A DNA stretch of 63,341 nucleotides, counting the filler, from Hyphochytrium catenoides (Eukaryota > Protista > Hyphochytriomycota): assembly GCA_900088475.1 (NCBI GenBank). It is 3 parts of 3 records of this genome, joined end to end, with 100 filler letters (N's around TTAATTAATTAA, not from the genome) between each part and the next. Parts side by side here need not be neighbours in the genome. Positions count along the whole stretch, not along the records: positions 35,496 to 63,341 come from FLMG01003383.1; 2 more parts are not named here. One strand, written 5' to 3'. This document shows, piece after piece, positions 35,498 through 56,388 of this stretch. The notes below the pieces were generated by a model that was not told the origin of the DNA, did no database searches, and worked only from the letters and a program-made list of their open reading frames with translations. How positions within the stretch are numbered: position 1 is the stretch's first letter; every line of letters starts with the position of its first letter. The position numbers and the translations under genes are program-made.

Positions 35498-38218
35498 GCA
35501 GCCAACACAGCACAAGCTACAACTACCACTTCCGGTTCCGCTGTTGTCTCTGGTGGTCTTGGGGTGGCGCTAGATACGCGCCTGGGTGGCACAGTGTATG
35601 CTAGCCATACGGGGGACGCAACAAGCACGACGACTGGGTCACTGATTGTAAGTGGAGGAGTTGGAATTGCAAAGAGTGTGTTTATTGGTGGAGCCCTCAC
35701 AACCAACAGTGTGCTAGATGCAAGCGCAACGAACGTGGCCTCGATGGTCGTCTCTGGTGGCCTTGGGGTGGCTAAAGACAGCTACTTTGGCGGTACAATC
35801 TACGCTACCAACACAGGTGACTCTTCGAACTCAATGACTGGTGCTATAATTGTTAGTGGCGGACTTGGCGTGTATAAAAAGGCCTCTATCGGAGGAGTGC
35901 TTACGGCAGCCAACACTGCGGAGTCTACCGCTACGACTGTCGGTTCCGCAGTGGTGTTTGGAGGTCTTGGGGTTGCCAAAGACAGCTACTTGGGTGGGAC
36001 TGTGTATGCGACCAACACGAATGATGCTTCTACTTCAATGAGTGGAGCCATAATCACACGCGGTGGACTGGGCGTGTACAAGAAAGCATTTATTGGGGGT
36101 ATCCTGACTGCAGCCAACACAGCACAAGCTACAACTACCACTTCCGGTTCCGCTATTGTGTCCGGTGGGCTTGGGGTGGCGCTAGATACACGTCTAGGTG
36201 GCACTGTGTATGCTAGCCATACGGGAGACGCAACAAGCACGACGACTGGATCACTGATTGTAAGTGGCGGCGTTGGTATTGCAAAGAGTGTGTTTATTGG
36301 TGGAGCCCTCACAACCAACAGTGTGCTAGATGCAAGCGCAACGAACGTGGCGTCCATGGTAGTCTCTGGTGGCCTTGGGGTGGCTAAAGACAGCTACTTT
36401 GGCGGTACAATCTACGCTACCAATACAGGTGACTCTTCGAACTCAATGACTGGTGCTGTAATTGTTAGTGGCGGACTTGGCGTGTATAAAAAGGCCTCTA
36501 TCGGAGGAGTGCTTACGGCAGCCAACACTGCGGAGTCTACCGCTACGACTGTCGGTTCCGCAGTGGTGTCTGGAGGTCTTGGGGTTGCCAAAGACAGCTA
36601 CTTGGGTGGGACCGTTTATGCGACCAACACGAATGATGCTTCTACTTCAATGAGTGGAGCCATAATCACACGCGGTGGACTGGGCGTGTACAAGAAAGCA
36701 TTTATTGGGGGTATCCTGACTGCAGCCAACACAGCACAAGCTACAACTACCACTTCCGGTTCCGCTGTTGTGTCCGGTGGGCTTGGGGTGGCGCTAGATA
36801 CACGTCTGGGTGGCACGGTGTATGCTAGTCATACGGGGGACGCAACAAGCACGACGACTGGATCACTGATTGTAAGTGGCGGCGTTGGAATTGCAAAGAG
36901 TGTGTTCATTGGTGGAGCCCTCACGACCAACAGTGTGCTAGATGCAAGCGCAACGAACGTGGCGTCCATGGTAGTCTCTGGAGGTCTCGGGATTGCCAAG
37001 GACAGTTACCTGGGCGGAACGCTGTATGCGACAAACACCAACGATGCTTCCAATTCAATGACTGGAGCCATCATCGTCCGCGGAGGGATCAGTGTGTACA
37101 AAAACGCATTTATTGGGGGGGTGTTGACTGCAGCCAACACTGCGCAGGCTACAACTACCACTTCTGGTTCCGCTGTTGTCTCCGGTGGCCTTGGGGTGGC
37201 GCTAGATACGCGTTTGGGTGGCACAGTCTACGCCACTAATACGGGCGATTCCACAAGTACGACGACTGGGTCATTGATAGTAAGCGGCGGAGTTGGAATT
37301 GCAAAGAGTTTGTTTATAGGTGGAGCATTCACGACCAACAGTGTGCTAGATGCAAGCGCAACAAACGTGGCATCTATGGCAGTCTCTGGAGGTCTTGGAG
37401 TGGCTAAAGACAGTTACTTTGGTGGTACAGTGTACGCTACAAACACAGGAGAGTCTTCAAACTCAATGACCGGAGCAGTGATCATCCGCGGTGGACTCGG
37501 TGTATATAAAAAGGCATTTATTGGGGGTATTCTGACTGCAGCCAACAACGCGCAATCTACGGCTACCAATACCGGTTCCGCAATGGTGTCTGGTGGTCTT
37601 GGCGTAGCCATGGACACGTATATTGGAGGAACGGTGTATATTATGCATACTGGTGACTCATCCAGCACGACAACGGGTGCACTCATTGTGAAAGGAGGAG
37701 CGGGAGTTGCAAAGAATTCATTTATAGGTGGTGTACTTACAGCTGCCAATGCGTTAGACGCAAGTGCAACTAACGTGGCTTCCATGGTTGTGGCTGGGGG
37801 TCTTGGGGTAGCCAAAGACAGCTACATTGGTGGTGTTGTCCGCGCATTAGGTGGCATCGATGCGACAAGCTCTACAACCGGATCTCTGGTTGTGAGTGGT
37901 GGGATTGGCGTCCAGCAAAATAGTCACCTGGGTGGCGATCTGTACGTTGGCACCTCCTTGAAAGTAGCTGGTACCCCAGCGGACTCTACAGCCACAAACG
38001 CGGGCTCAATCGTTATCACAGGAGGACTGGGATTAAGCCAGAACCTTTACGTCGGAGGCTCCGCTGTCTTGGGTCAAAGACTCTACATTCCGCATGCGGG
38101 GGACATGTCCAACACCTATGGCTCCACCAGCTGCCAGAAGGGAGAGTTTCGGTTTGATGATACGTATGCCTACTTCTGCATTACCGGTGGTACTTACAAA
38201 GTGGTATCTCTCCTATGA
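35498..38218 (+). CDS. Intronless G/T/S/A-rich 34-aa tandem-repeat protein, viral/phage fibre-like (5'-truncated at contig edge)
   Basis: The frame is open from the contig start. About 25 units of consensus (S/A)TSTTTG(S/A)L(I/V)VSGG(L/V)G(V/I)AKxx(F/Y)(I/L)GGxxxxxxxxD, ending SCQKGEFRFDDTYAYFCITGGTYKVVSLL*. Confidence 0.85.
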   Translation, partial: AANTAQATTTTSGSAVVSGGLGVALDTRLGGTVYASHTGDATSTTTGSLIVSGGVGIAKSVFIGGALTTNSVLDASATNVASMVVSGGLGVAKDSYFGGTIYATNTGDSSNSMTGAIIVSGGLGVYKKASIGGVLTAANTAESTATTVGSAVVFGGLGVAKDSYLGGTVYATNTNDASTSMSGAIITRGGLGVYKKAFIGGILTAANTAQATTTTSGSAIVSGGLGVALDTRLGGTVYASHTGDATSTTTGSLIVSGGVGIAKSVFIGGALTTNSVLDASATNVASMVVSGGLGVAKDSYFGGTIYATNTGDSSNSMTGAVIVSGGLGVYKKASIGGVLTAANTAESTATTVGSAVVSGGLGVAKDSYLGGTVYATNTNDASTSMSGAIITRGGLGVYKKAFIGGILTAANTAQATTTTSGSAVVSGGLGVALDTRLGGTVYASHTGDATSTTTGSLIVSGGVGIAKSVFIGGALTTNSVLDASATNVASMVVSGGLGIAKDSYLGGTLYATNTNDASNSMTGAIIVRGGISVYKNAFIGGVLTAANTAQATTTTSGSAVVSGGLGVALDTRLGGTVYATNTGDSTSTTTGSLIVSGGVGIAKSLFIGGAFTTNSVLDASATNVASMAVSGGLGVAKDSYFGGTVYATNTGESSNSMTGAVIIRGGLGVYKKAFIGGILTAANNAQSTATNTGSAMVSGGLGVAMDTYIGGTVYIMHTGDSSSTTTGALIVKGGAGVAKNSFIGGVLTAANALDASATNVASMVVAGGLGVAKDSYIGGVVRALGGIDATSSTTGSLVVSGGIGVQQNSHLGGDLYVGTSLKVAGTPADSTATNAGSIVITGGLGLSQNLYVGGSAVLGQRLYIPHAGDMSNTYGSTSCQKGEFRFDDTYAYFCITGGTYKVVSLL
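35516..38100 (+). repeat. Coding tandem repeat: 102-bp unit organised into 612-bp and 408-bp higher-order repeats
   Basis: Near-identical segments 612 bp apart (e.g. 35850 vs 36462); six distinct 34-aa unit types. Confidence 0.9.
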
Positions 38219-38611: not shown

Positions 38612-39472
38612 CTAGAGGTCAGAGCCTGAGACGTTGCCATCGCTAACACTATCACAGTCGTGCATAGGTAACGTCTGGGAGGAAGAAGATGGAGAGAAAG
38701 TCCCTTCTTGCTCGTCGCTGCTGTCACTCGTCATGTTGTCGACCTTGGGGCTACCCTGCTCACTGCTAAAGATTTCCTTTTTGATCTTTGAAAACTTCGG
38801 GATGCCATGAGGGTTGTCAAGCATTTCCTTGAGCTTTGCTTCTAATGCACTAGCTTGTTGTCCGAACCTTACCCTCGGTTGGCCTTGAGACTTTGCTTCG
38901 GATGCCCTTAACGCTGCAATCGAGTTTCTCATGCTCCGAATCTGTCTATGGGGCCATCTCTTAATGCCGATTTGCCGACAGATTTTCTTGAGCAAGGTTG
39001 TGCAAATTCCTAGGTGCTTGGCAACATCTACTATGGGCATGTCGAAATAATTACGAAGCTCTTCTAGAGTGACGGGGGAGGCCGCCACCTTCCTCTGCAT
39101 GGGTATAGTTTCCAGCAAGGTAGCCCTGGTGGTCGTCTTAACGGGCACCCAAGCGGCTTTGCTAGAAGTAGATCTGGCTTTGGCGGCTTTGCTAGAGTGA
39201 GCTGGAGGAGATGGCCTGCTACGTTTCAATGAATTGGGAGATGAGGACCCCAGTCCTGAAAAAGAGCTGGTGAGTTCTGCATGCCGAAGGACGTGCCCTC
39301 CATCGTCCTTCTTATCAACCTTGCTCGGTACAGGATTGCCGACCATGTATGTGGAGTCTCCTCGCAAACGCAGCAAAGCAATGCATGTCATATAGTCTGC
39401 AGTATCGACACCGCTGCGCTTGAACTCCTCTTGGAAGGGGGTAGAAAGCTGATTGGCGATTGTCAGAGCCAT
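38612..39472 (-). CDS. RWP-RK domain transcription factor (single coding exon)
   Basis: VTLEELRNYFDMPIVDVAKHLGICTTLLKKICRQIGIKRWPHRQIRSM is a canonical RWP-RK domain (RWPHRQ variant) followed by a coiled coil. Confidence 0.92.
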   Translation of the reverse strand: MALTIANQLSTPFQEEFKRSGVDTADYMTCIALLRLRGDSTYMVGNPVPSKVDKKDDGGHVLRHAELTSSFSGLGSSSPNSLKRSRPSPPAHSSKAAKARSTSSKAAWVPVKTTTRATLLETIPMQRKVAASPVTLEELRNYFDMPIVDVAKHLGICTTLLKKICRQIGIKRWPHRQIRSMRNSIAALRASEAKSQGQPRVRFGQQASALEAKLKEMLDNPHGIPKFSKIKKEIFSSEQGSPKVDNMTSDSSDEQEGTFSPSSSSQTLPMHDCDSVSDGNVSGSDL

Positions 39473-53540: not shown

Positions 53541-56388
53541 TCAAAATCGACTCTGCAGCAACCGTGATAACTCCTCCCAGTGATGCATAATAGCACGAGC
53601 CCCAGCCACTTCCAGCTTCTTCGAAGCTAGCTCACGCTTGTGAGGGGGTAGGCTGCCCACGTACCCAATGACAGGGATGCCCGCCCCAACAGCAGAGAGA
53701 GTGCCATTTACAGAGTCTTCTATAGCAACGCATTGGTCTGGACCTGCTCTCAGATCTTGCAAGGCGTGACAGTAAACCGCCTTGTCAGGCTTACTCTTAG
53801 GTACAGGGAGAGAGGAGACAGCACTGTAGACGTGGTCCTTAGGAATTCTCAAGTCAAGCCTTGTCTTCTCTAGACAAGCCCTGACTCGAGGAAGAGAACT
53901 GGATGATACCACCGCAAAGTTTGTGCCTATAGGAAGAGTAGGAGAGAAGGTGAGGAGTAGATCAAAGACACATAAGATAAATGAAAGGTATAGCGATCTC
54001 AACGGAAAGAGGAACAAGTGCCAGAGAGGAGGAGAACCTAGAGACGGACAGCTACACAGACAAAAGAGAGGTTAAGGGCCAACTGCGGATCAACACTAAG
54101 AGAAAGGAGCGTGAACCCAAGGTGGAGAAGATTCGTGATTCTACCTGTCCCTTCCAGGAACTCTAACATTGCCGAGACACCCGAGCACGTCTCTACTCTT
54201 TCCTGCAAGTACCCAGTGACCCGCGCATCTTCCTGTAGGGCCAATTCATCCAGCTCCTGCGGTCCAACGGCAAAGTTATGCTTCTTTGCTAGTTCCAGAA
54301 CAATGCCCCTGAAGGCCATACCAACATATGCAGACTCCAGCTCATGGGGTAGGTAGCGGTCAGAAACGCCCTTCCGTTGCAACAGCTCATTGAGGACGCC
54401 GGTGCAAGCCTCAAAGGCGTAAGTCTCAGAGTTGACCAGTGTTCCATCACAGTCCAGTAGAAGGAACTGCCAACTGGGAGCACACGCTAGGGCCTTTGGA
54501 GACAGGGTACCGGTGGGGCTGCTGACTTTGTTGGGAGAAGATGGAGTTTGGTGCTCGGTGTCCAAGAAGTGCTCAATAGCTCTTTGTAGACCCAGAGCGG
54601 AGATTAGCTGCAGGCTGAAGGTGAAGAGCTGGATGAACTCCTTTATCTCAGCGACTCTAAGGAACCGAGAGTCGTCCAGAACCTCTCCAACCTGTCTGAG
54701 AAGCACTTGTACTTCAGCTGGAGAGGCTTTTCCCGTAGCACCGAGCTCTATCTGATCACTAAGAATGAGAAGGTTGTCCGCTAGAGGGTCATCCTGCTCA
54801 ATGTGACTTCCCGTTTCGCTGGAAGATGAGAAATTCACCATCCAGATTGCTGCAGCAAAGGCAGGACCCAGGAGAACATCCTGGCTGGCTTCATACGCCT
54901 GCAGGATGGGCTCAAAGAAGCGCTGAGCCACCTTCCTAGTGGAGCAGCGGCTGATGCGTGAAATGGAGTCAGCGATTTGCTCGTTGCGAAACCTTTCTCT
55001 TATGGATGACGCGTACTTTGCCAAAGTCTCTCTCGTATCTGGACACCCAGGAATGCTCAGAAGGACCTCACAGAAGTCCCTGTGAAGCTGGGACAGTAGT
55101 CGGTATACACGCGGGTCCTTCAGAGCATCGTGGACCCATGTATAGCCCAGTCTCTGGCCGCAAACCGCAATGACATGGTGTCCACCATTCACCAAGAAAG
55201 CCTTACGCTTCCAATAATAACCGCAATCCTGCACAACCTCCGCCCCGGCTTGCGTCCAATCGGGATTCTCATATTTCAGGTTGTTTGGAGCGATGACGAA
55301 GCTCTTGAAGGTCTCGGTGTGAACCTGGACGTGCCCCAAACAAGGATCAGGGGAAGGAGAAGAGAAAGAGTTGCTGTTGGTCTTCTTCTTCTCCGCTCTG
55401 TGCTTATTCGCAGATCGTGCTGCGGTGTCTAAGCTGCTAACCTTCATGTCCGAGGCGATTCTGTCTACCATCGTTGTTAAAAACTGAACGTTCTCTTCAA
55501 CCCACTCAGCTGTCTCTGGCTCGGTGTGCCTCAAGATAGTCAATAGAGCCGTCTGCAGTCTCGTTCCATTGTTCTCGCAATTGTCGAGAGACATGATGGT
55601 CAGCGGGCGCTTGCTCCGTTGCCGTCTCAGAGTCAAGCCTGGATGTAGCAGATGGGGTAAGATAAAGGTAGCCAGGGGAGCAAATAAAAGGAAGGACCCC
55701 GGCGGAAGCACTCAGAGGCAAGAGAAGCCGATAAGAAGCGAAGACGTCAAGAAACTGATGGAGAAGAGAGCACGGAGAGGAGGCGGAAGAGGAGAACAGA
55801 GGGCACGTATGGCAGAGGAAGAGGAGAAGAGGAAACAGCAGTTTTGATATTCAATAATAATGAGGAGAAAGGAGGCTCTGTACCGTTCACGAGATAGCCG
55901 TAGATTGTCCTTGGCGCGGCTCCACCCTTGTGGTGCTCGCCTTCTAACCAATTGAGGTCAAACTGAACGTTCCAGTCACCAAGGTTCAAAGCACCATCTT
56001 GGAGAAAGTAGCCTTCGGAGGTCACGGTCAGAGTGACCACGCGGATGCGCGGATCTGCAAGCCATTGGACCAGCCGGTCAGGGTCACGCGATGCTGCCAC
56101 TGTCTCCACTATGGGCGCCAACAGCGAGAGACGCTTGCATCTCTGGTCTTTCTCCTGCAGCAGGTACATCCCATCTCTTGCCTTTAGATGCTCCACCACT
56201 TCGCAGGAGCGGATGGAGGAGGCAACAATGCCCCAAGAAGGATCTGTTCGGAGGATATCCTGGACGAACGGTCCCAGAAAGGCGAGGGAGAACTTCCCTG
56301 TGCCAATATGAAGGATGCCCGGGGTGACTTGGGAAGAGTCAAAGCTTGGCGTTGAGATAAGAGCCTCCTCTTCTGCCTGATTCATCAT
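53541..56388 (-). CDS. Fusion of a long-chain mannitol dehydrogenase-family domain and a HAD phosphatase (M1Pase-like); 794 aa; exons 56388-55884, 55638-54145, 53926-53541
   Basis: Exon lengths 505+1494+386 = 2385 nt, in frame. Dehydrogenase motifs: GILHIGTG, VVTLTVTSEGY, MSLDN, MVDRI, RKAFLVNGGH, RFRN...DSISRI. HAD motifs: LLDCDGTLVNSE, VVSSS, SKPDKAVY, AIEDSVNG. Confidence 0.92.

Follow-up and report, generated by a model that had tools for sequence, protein, structure and literature searches.

Enzymes that join a mannitol-1-phosphate dehydrogenase (M1PDH) to a mannitol-1-phosphatase (M1Pase) have been described before. The fusion of Micromonas pusilla gives mannitol in Escherichia coli and in cyanobacteria (Madsen et al. 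2018, as cited in bioRxiv 10.1101/2020.07.01.179531) and has an N-terminal dehydrogenase and a C-terminal HAD-type phosphatase. In the bifunctional MtlD of Acinetobacter baumannii (AbMtlD) and A. baylyi (7OCN-7OCU) a HAD-IA domain and a polyol-specific long-chain dehydrogenase/reductase (PSLDR) likewise share one polypeptide and display the motifs KxxxxNxxH, DxxxR and RxxxRK. In Eimeria tenella (M1PDH AAD02688.1) and in brown algae the dehydrogenase and the phosphatase are separate proteins; the Eimeria M1Pase is a histidine phosphatase and not a HAD enzyme, whereas the brown-algal M1Pases are HAD proteins that were aligned to the structure 2FDR, and the PSLDR blocks A-E can be traced in the M1PDHs of brown algae. 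The subject of the present analysis is a gene on the minus strand at positions 53541-56388 of a 63,341-nt stretch of Hyphochytrium catenoides DNA (assembly GCA_900088475.1; hereafter the window, meaning the whole stretch of three joined parts, the last of which, from FLMG01003383.1, holds the gene). It encodes a 794-aa fusion protein in which a long-form PSLDR domain is followed by a HAD phosphatase domain and which, judging from its sequence and from the loci of its relatives, we consider with a probability of about 0.62 to be a bifunctional enzyme that would convert fructose-6-phosphate (F6P) to mannitol within one polypeptide.

The order of the two domains is that of the Micromonas fusion as described, and the proposed two-step chemistry is the same. 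The Acinetobacter enzyme differs in having its HAD domain at the N-terminus, a short dehydrogenase of the MtlD type and a helix-loop-helix dimerisation insert; the HAD domain of the Hyphochytrium protein matches the phosphatase domain of AbMtlD and is recognisably related to it. The dehydrogenase half resembles mannitol 2-dehydrogenase (M2DH), as known from Pseudomonas fluorescens (1LJ8/1M2W) and Aspergillus fumigatus (7RK4/7RK5), in its long two-domain scaffold of ~490-530 aa and in the TVTxxGY and xDN blocks, and departs from it in showing FSLAF for FHRAH, SLDN for SCDN and RK for MK, in the addition of R399 and R403, and in a clade-specific C-terminal helical extension. With E. coli MtlD (b3600; 3H2Z, 5JNM) it shares an arginine before the catalytic lysine and identical residues at the positions of R606, R609, R613 and K614 of AbMtlD, whereas MtlD is only ~380 aa long and lacks the long N-domain blocks. 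An Eimeria-type protein in the AlphaFold Database (AFDB; U6GIH8, 825 aa, "M1PDH, related") has the long-form fold and aligns over ~550 residues with the model of a homologue of the Hyphochytrium protein, at 19% identity. An M2DH-like scaffold that acts on a phosphorylated substrate and is fused to its own phosphatase is thus a kind of enzyme already known. The initial annotation of this DNA had presented the combination as unusual; less of it is unusual than was stated there, long-form proteins annotated as M1PDH and fusions of the Micromonas type having been described already.

The coding region comprises three exons separated by two GT-AG introns, and both halves of the product are recognised by Pfam, in agreement with the proposed spliced 794-aa frame that joins a dehydrogenase to a HAD phosphatase with intact motifs (Table 1). 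Exon 2 is a single uninterrupted frame of 497 codons that spans the dehydrogenase C-domain, the interdomain linker and HAD motif I (DCDGT), and the fusion is therefore independent of the splice model; a mis-joined gene model is ruled out by the same observation. Both splice junctions are in register with an intronless homologue, P0001. Contigs in Logan from two DNA runs (X1 and X2) cover the gene; the runs are labelled with the window's organism, and the window may have been assembled from one of them. The 11 exonic differences in these contigs (six synonymous and five nonsynonymous, two of the latter in the interdomain linker) never break the frame; the sole indel, a 1-nt deletion at 54070 in run X2, lies within predicted intron 2, and intron 1 holds two further strain variants. 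This variation lends modest support to the predicted introns and suggests purifying selection, likewise on modest evidence. The dehydrogenase has a low-complexity insertion in one of its surface loops (aa 236-271), which is lineage-specific and missing from every aligned homologue, all of which have a short conserved loop at this point.

Matches above the gathering scores of Pfam cover both halves: Mannitol_dh in exon 1 and, at 51.4 bits, in exon 2 (cut-off 27), Mannitol_dh_C in exon 2 (92.8 bits; cut-off 30.7), and HAD_2 (34.5 bits; cut-off 23.8) together with Hydrolase (31.4 bits) in exon 3, with weak HAD matches at the C-terminal end of exon 2. Against the NCBIfam models exon 1 gives N-terminal matches to DalD and fructuronate reductase and none to MtlD, and the best dehydrogenase profile scores are those of the M2DH, DalD and UxuB type. 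For the HAD half the closest models, with scores that stay under the cut-off, are those of the 6-phosphogluconate phosphatase YieH and the hexitol phosphatase HxpB.

The protein contains the N-terminal GxGxF dinucleotide fold (G29TGKF33) and the KxxxxNxxH motif that characterise PSLDRs, and its HAD half has motifs I-IV intact, which together with the HAD_2 score places it in the HAD-IA class. The sequence blocks quoted in the initial annotation were all recovered, as were its observations that GTGKFSLAF (aa 29-37) replaces the FHRAH of M2DH and that an arginine stands directly before the catalytic lysine (R313-K314); the block equivalent to SCDN reads IMSLDN (aa 183-188). KxxxxNxxH is the catalytic motif of PSLDRs, and in the crystal structures of AbMtlD the DxxxR motif contacts sugar hydroxyls while an arginine-rich motif, 609-RxxxRKxxxx(E/D)R-620, lies around the phosphate of F6P, with R609, R613 and K614 surrounding the phosphate and R606 placed on the sugar hydroxyls; this arginine-rich motif has been described as a hallmark separating M1PDH from M2DH (PMC9168451). 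Column for column, D392, R396, R399, R403 and K404 of the Hyphochytrium protein align with D602, R606, R609, R613 and K614 of AbMtlD, and the same stretch aligns residue for residue with DDVERVGRQPLRK of E. coli MtlD. K314, N319, H322, D392 and R396 are the residues that AbMtlD uses for its sugar contacts with F6P and mannitol-1-phosphate (M1P).

The distribution of these arginines was surveyed in 265 aligned sequences of the family, a biased sample. The 196 sequences of the canonical M2DH/UxuB type have no basic residue at position 609, 610 or 613 (AbMtlD numbering), and those that do carry one belong mostly to four groups tied to phosphatases, namely the clade of the Hyphochytrium protein (hereafter the focal clade), a set of actinobacterial dehydrogenase-HAD fusions, the fusion group of P0135, and a group whose genes lie in an operon with a histidine phosphatase. 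The full MtlD arginine pattern was found in E. coli MtlD, the Hyphochytrium protein and two focal-clade members of another subclade only, and two of the actinobacterial fusions show it together with an extra arginine, R610. The arginine at position 613 (R403) is common to the Hyphochytrium protein, P0001, P0105 and P0133; that at 609 (R399) occurs in the Hyphochytrium protein alone within its own subclade and, in the wider clade, in P0118 and P0119. The earlier comparison of the RxxRxxxRK motif with MtlD accordingly holds for the protein itself, in which R396, R399, R403 and K404 align with MtlD, and does not extend to the clade, where the exact R399/R403 pattern is rare and the nearest relatives share R403 only.

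Structural comparisons were made with an AlphaFold2 model of the homologue P0001 (pLDDT 89.6). In Foldseek searches this model matched the M2DH 7RK5, the sorbitol dehydrogenase 5ITG, YdfI (4IM7) and the P. fluorescens M2DH 1LJ8 at E ~1e-25 with target-normalised TM scores of 0.77-0.82, and more weakly the MtlD structures 3H2Z and 5JNM (E ~1e-15); the TM score to the Acinetobacter MtlD was ~0.4. The model thus supports a long-form scaffold for the focal-clade dehydrogenases, and the proposal of an M2DH-type scaffold is borne out in that M2DH ranks ahead of MtlD. For the HAD half, the best fold match of the same model is 2FDR (Atu0790), and P0185, a protein 49% identical to part of the Hyphochytrium HAD half, also has 2FDR as its first solved match (E 5e-18, 69 bits); the likeness to 2FDR was thus observed on these two relatives rather than on the Hyphochytrium HAD itself. 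Among stand-alone proteins the Hyphochytrium HAD half is best matched by a partial Paraphysoderma sedebokerense protein, with 49% identity over the matched stretch, and for both enzyme halves the nearest named relatives are zoosporic fungi.

Close relatives of the fusion are few. An exhaustive HMMER search of 1.84 billion representative sequences with exon 2 as query recovered 12 proteins at E <1e-30, none of them more than 40% identical, and a genome scan with a tight alignment of the clade found only four bacterial species, all represented by metagenome-assembled genomes (MAGs), among 185,579. No relative turned up when viral_contigs was scanned with the alignment of the clade; since a single peptide pattern was used, this is weak negative evidence. 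The named members of the clade are chytrids (Spizellomyces punctatus, S. 'palustris' and two Gaertneriomyces species) and MAGs of Candidatus Obscuribacterales/Melainabacteria. In the clade, which takes in the proteins of the HMMER search together with weaker hits, G(T/P/A)GNFALAH replaces GxGxFHRAH and SLDN replaces SCDN, the catalytic lysine is preceded by W-x-(R/L)-K-F, and the signature further includes the stretch D...RV(G/A)AR(A/G)TSK(V/I)S(E/D)RL and a C-terminal helical extension of the dehydrogenase that is ~40 residues long. In AFDB the Spizellomyces protein alone exceeds 23% identity to the clade model, and the sole eukaryotic cluster that aligns with both halves shows 15%. These low identities and the absence of green algae from the named members argue indirectly that the Micromonas fusion, compared by its description, probably lies outside the clade.

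Two maximum likelihood trees of the dehydrogenase domain, one of 89 taxa (LG+F+G4) and one of 68 taxa (LG+G4) to which six MtlDs and the dehydrogenases neighbouring clade members were added, both recover the focal clade (ultrafast bootstrap 80 and 100). In both it groups with a few sister sequences (P0135, P0152, P0214), and a split separates the two from MtlD, all M2DH, UxuB, the actinobacterial type and the P0143 type (supports 97/93 and 74); MtlD itself forms a separate long branch. Within the clade the Hyphochytrium protein falls in a long-branched subclade with P0105, P0001, P0106 and P0133 (supports 99-100). Its dehydrogenase is therefore a distinct long-form lineage, neither nested in true M2DH nor specifically allied to MtlD. 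That the protein is a plain M2DH was considered and ruled out by the motif and tree tests, the protein having FSLAF, SLDN and RK and lying outside the clade of the Pseudomonas and Penicillium M2DH, and by the presence of a separate canonical M2DH beside some of its relatives. The idea that an enzyme of M2DH lineage was independently re-specialised for a phosphorylated substrate is not upheld by these trees, which put the clade outside M2DH and UxuB; the root of the family being unplaced, phospho-sugar specificity could equally well be ancestral and the polarity the reverse. What appears to be new is the clade itself, which is rare, uncharacterised and consistently coupled to a HAD phosphatase.

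The strongest evidence on function comes from the genomic context of the relatives, surveyed at 13 clade loci from bacteria-like contigs, from chytrids and from the Hyphochytrium gene. At 12 of these an orthologous HAD is either part of the same protein as the dehydrogenase or encoded next to it, the partner HADs being treated as orthologues because they score 94-216 bits against the Hyphochytrium HAD domain as compared with 69 bits for P0185 against 2FDR. Five loci encode fusions (Hyphochytrium, P0001, P0104, P0106, P0107); at six others (L008, L010, L012, L014, L015, L016) the HAD gene is directly downstream on the same strand, with overlapping frames in two; and in S. punctatus it is a head-to-head neighbour whose product is 49% identical to the Hyphochytrium HAD half. 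The candidate one-polypeptide mannitol pathway of the initial annotation is thus a plausible reading with strong support from the context of the clade loci. In S. punctatus (KQ257463.1, L020:3732-7944) the dehydrogenase SPPG_07177, annotated as uncharacterized or as mannitol 2-dehydrogenase, and the HAD are separate genes ~1.5 kb apart, and may be a bidirectionally regulated pair that makes mannitol.

Four loci (L007, L012, L014, L015) further encode a second, divergently transcribed dehydrogenase, which is a canonical M2DH: it is 44-47% identical to the Penicillium and Pseudomonas enzymes, falls inside the M2DH clade and has the motifs FHRSH, SCDN and MK without the extra arginines. Because this canonical M2DH sits beside it, the clade dehydrogenase would not be redundant with M2DH. 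One of these loci (L007) adds a PfkB kinase, with fructokinase as its best model, and a cupin whose match is to type II phosphomannose isomerase (PMI), in the isomerase portion of that enzyme. M2DH, the clade dehydrogenase, the HAD, the fructokinase and the PMI together outline the set of enzymes that a mannitol cycle needs. Most neighbours at the loci L001, L007, L008 and L010 belong to no Pfam family. On the contig of the P0001 fusion an HSP70 gene (L001:1-2274) was called as several short open reading frames (ORFs), and these fragments suggest introns and hence a eukaryotic contig, on which the fusion gene itself is without introns.

Within the focal clade the fusions are spread over several points of the tree, and at least three separate C-terminal HAD fusions are seen among long PSLDRs, namely in the focal clade, in the actinobacterial Geodermatophilaceae type and in P0135; the Hyphochytrium type is one among several independent dehydrogenase-HAD fusions. 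Two candidates for an algal-type fusion were rejected by homology searches, P0115 being actinobacterial (Geodermatophilaceae type) and P0135, of metagenomic origin, an orphan close to ordinary M2DH; each is a separate fusion event. The actinobacterial fusions (P0115, P0261-P0263, P0137) keep FHRAH and SCDN and have RL(S/A/C/T)RR(G/S)SxK at the phosphate site, and some UniRef entries among their unfused relatives are named mannitol-1-phosphate 5-dehydrogenase. Two bacterial contigs (L021:3338-8210 and L022:1969-7618, with P0143 and P0217) carry a candidate mannitol-cycle operon in the order long PSLDR of another clade (with arginine at the equivalent of position 609), canonical M2DH-type dehydrogenase, PfkB kinase, PMI-like cupin and ROK kinase; in L021 a histidine-phosphatase gene lies directly upstream, which recalls the histidine-phosphatase-type M1Pase of Eimeria.

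On the favoured reading, in which the Hyphochytrium protein makes mannitol from F6P, the PSLDR domain would bind NAD(P)H through G29TGKF and hold F6P, in its open-chain form, in the interdomain cleft, with K314, N319 and H322 providing catalysis and hydroxyl contacts, D392 and R396 contacting sugar hydroxyls, and R399, R403, K404 and probably R408 surrounding the phosphate. Hydride transfer to F6P would yield M1P, which the HAD domain would hydrolyse through an aspartyl-phosphate on D564, with Mg2+ bound by D564, D566 and E737/D738. The sequence of reactions would be effectively irreversible and would limit free M1P, as has been argued for AbMtlD (PMC9168451), and the enzyme would serve a mannitol cycle as its biosynthetic arm. 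The architecture, the motifs, the fold class, the clade and the linkage to a HAD are established here; we infer which substrate and cofactor the enzyme uses, in which direction it runs, any passage of the intermediate from one site to the other by channelling, and that the gene is expressed.

Several observations weigh against this reading. Scores against the bacterial MtlD equivalogs (NCBIfam NF002645-NF002653) reach 79.9 bits at best where the cut-off is 404, and across these models stay at or below 80 bits for cut-offs of 356-404, while the model of the bifunctional MtlD (NF046057) gives 28.7 and 23.8 bits against a cut-off of 800. The end of the arginine-rich motif deviates from xxxx(E/D)R, since K404-VAQ-R408 is two residues shorter and has Q for E/D, and the K404-xxx-R408 spacing equals that of E. 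coli UxuB (QKLPQRL), a carboxylate-binding enzyme. Most members of the focal clade have RVGARATSK, with the arginine at position 610 rather than at 609 and 613, and the named members are annotated only as hypothetical proteins or through automatic transfer of names. At the remaining surveyed locus (L026) the dehydrogenase P0133 has no recognisable HAD alongside, its neighbours being a lyxose/mannose-isomerase-like gene and a PRK-family kinase. Moreover, the fold evidence comes from a homologue and not from the Hyphochytrium protein, and the splicing and expression of the gene are predicted, its exon junctions resting on homology and strain variation.

Some of these points would fit an enzyme with the same logic of reduction followed by dephosphorylation and another substrate, such as sorbitol-6-phosphate, a pentitol or tetritol phosphate, or sedoheptulose-7-phosphate as the source of a heptitol. 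The deep separation of the clade from every assayed PSLDR, the variability of its arginine pattern and the HAD half, whose nearest curated models are YieH and the broad HxpB with scores below cut-off, all leave room for this. Against it, the M2DH, the fructokinase-like kinase and the PMI-like cupin found next to clade members fit fructose, mannose and mannitol and not pentitols, and K314, N319, H322, D392 and R396 are the F6P/M1P contacts of AbMtlD, so that we regard another substrate as unlikely, though worth keeping in view. Alternatively, the dehydrogenase might act on an unphosphorylated or acidic sugar, as an M2DH, a fructuronate reductase or a mannonate oxidoreductase, and the HAD might be an unrelated housekeeping phosphatase. 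The overall fold, the best profile scores (M2DH, DalD and UxuB type) and the UxuB-like spacing after K404 are what such an enzyme would show; yet M2DH and UxuB are without R399 and R403, a separate canonical M2DH adjoins the clade dehydrogenase at four loci, and the linkage to a HAD is kept at 12 of 13 loci with repeated fusion, all of which renders this alternative improbable.

The gene might also be a silent or decaying acquisition, by horizontal transfer or within a virus-derived region, with no present function. Its patchy distribution is typical of transferred genes, no orthologue above 40% identity was found among the 1.84 billion representatives, and a nearby ORF is weakly similar to repeat proteins of giant viruses and phages. 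A frame of 794 codons that is intact, interrupted by canonical introns, complete in every catalytic residue and kept in a second read set whose sole indel is intronic is hardly what decay would leave, and we hold this explanation to be highly improbable. Of a different order is the proposition that the clade is an ancient and so far undescribed line of PSLDRs which originally acted on a phosphorylated sugar with a dedicated HAD. Three other long-form groups near the point at which MtlD joins the tree have additional basic residues at their phosphate sites, and of these the P0135 and actinobacterial groups include HAD fusions and the P0143 group adjoins a histidine phosphatase. Were this so, which at present is a tentative and rather doubtful suggestion, phospho-sugar specificity would be ancestral in the family and M2DH and UxuB derived, the reverse of the scenario first proposed for this gene; the module would have spread by horizontal transfer among bacteria, chytrids and the Hyphochytrium lineage with several fusions along the way, and its product might be a polyol other than mannitol.

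Table 1. Features of the fusion gene and its product, in the direction of transcription; positions are those of the window.
Feature	Position	Strand	Residues	Description
Whole coding region	53541..56388	-	794 aa + stop	3 exons; spliced coding sequence 2385 nt, single terminal stop
Exon 1	55884..56388	-	aa 1-168 + 1 nt	N-terminal part of Rossmann domain; Pfam Mannitol_dh 30.5 bits
GTGKFSLAF (in exon 1)	56278-56304	-	aa 29-37	
LTVTSEGY (in exon 1)	56008-56031	-	aa 120-127	
Intron 1	55639..55883	-		GT..AG, 245 nt, phase 1; junction PRTIYGYLVNGLTLRR in register with P0001
Exon 2	54145..55638	-		Remaining Rossmann domain, catalytic C-domain, clade-specific helical extension, linker, HAD core motif I, cap
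Low-complexity insertion SSLDTAARSANKHRAEKKKTNSNSFSSPSPDPCLGH	55331..55438	-	aa 236-271 (36 residues)	Dehydrogenase surface loop
Catalytic motif K312-R313-K314-AFLV-N319-GG-H322	55178..55210	-		KxxxxNxxH, R directly before the lysine
D392SISR396-IS-R399CSTR403K404-VAQR408	54920..54970	-		M1PDH-type arginine-rich (phosphate-site) motif
Interdomain linker	54473..54562	-	aa 528-557	Ser/Pro/Thr-rich
HAD motif I, DCDGT		-	aa 561-573	D564-C-D566-G-T
Intron 2	53927..54144	-		GT..AG, 218 nt, phase 1; junction LEGTGTNFAVVSSS in register with P0001
Exon 3	53541..53926	-		HAD core motifs II-IV, then stop TGA at 53543-53541
HAD motif II, VVSSS	53895-53918	-	aa 670-677	
HAD motif III, K in SKPDK	53781-53795	-	aa 711-715	
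HAD motif IV, EDS	53703-53726	-	aa 734-741	E737-D738

Two other genes were noted in the same part of the window. An ORF at 35564-38218 on the plus strand, open at the left edge of the part, encodes at least 884 aa made up of ~90-residue Gly/Thr/Ala-rich repeats (GGLGVAKDSYxGGTxYATNTGD...) and gave no Pfam match; the Atlas clusters nearest to it are unnamed, some of them Nucleocytoviricota or phage bactofilin/tail-like beta-helix proteins (0.81-0.87, leads only), and this repeat protein may have come from a virus or by horizontal transfer. At 38612-39472 on the minus strand lies a single-exon gene for an RWP-RK transcription factor (286 aa, Pfam 83 bits), whose nearest Atlas cluster is from oomycetes (0.93, 218 shared features), unlike the fungal affinities of the fusion gene.

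These results overturn no current view, and since the kind of enzyme is known their value is incremental. The single-protein or paired catalysts used for F6P-to-mannitol conversion in metabolic engineering are the Micromonas fusion, E. coli MtlD with the Eimeria M1Pase, and the Acinetobacter MtlD, and this set would be extended by a family of the same logic that is phylogenetically separate. The clade would also offer a natural test of which residues give phosphate recognition on a long PSLDR scaffold, with an arginine at position 610 in most members as against 609 and 613 in the Hyphochytrium protein. Finally, the near-constant pairing of dehydrogenase and HAD provides a prediction of function for proteins of chytrids and Obscuribacterales that are now listed as hypothetical or as mannitol 2-dehydrogenase, and makes early-diverging fungi and Hyphochytrium catenoides candidates for having a mannitol cycle.

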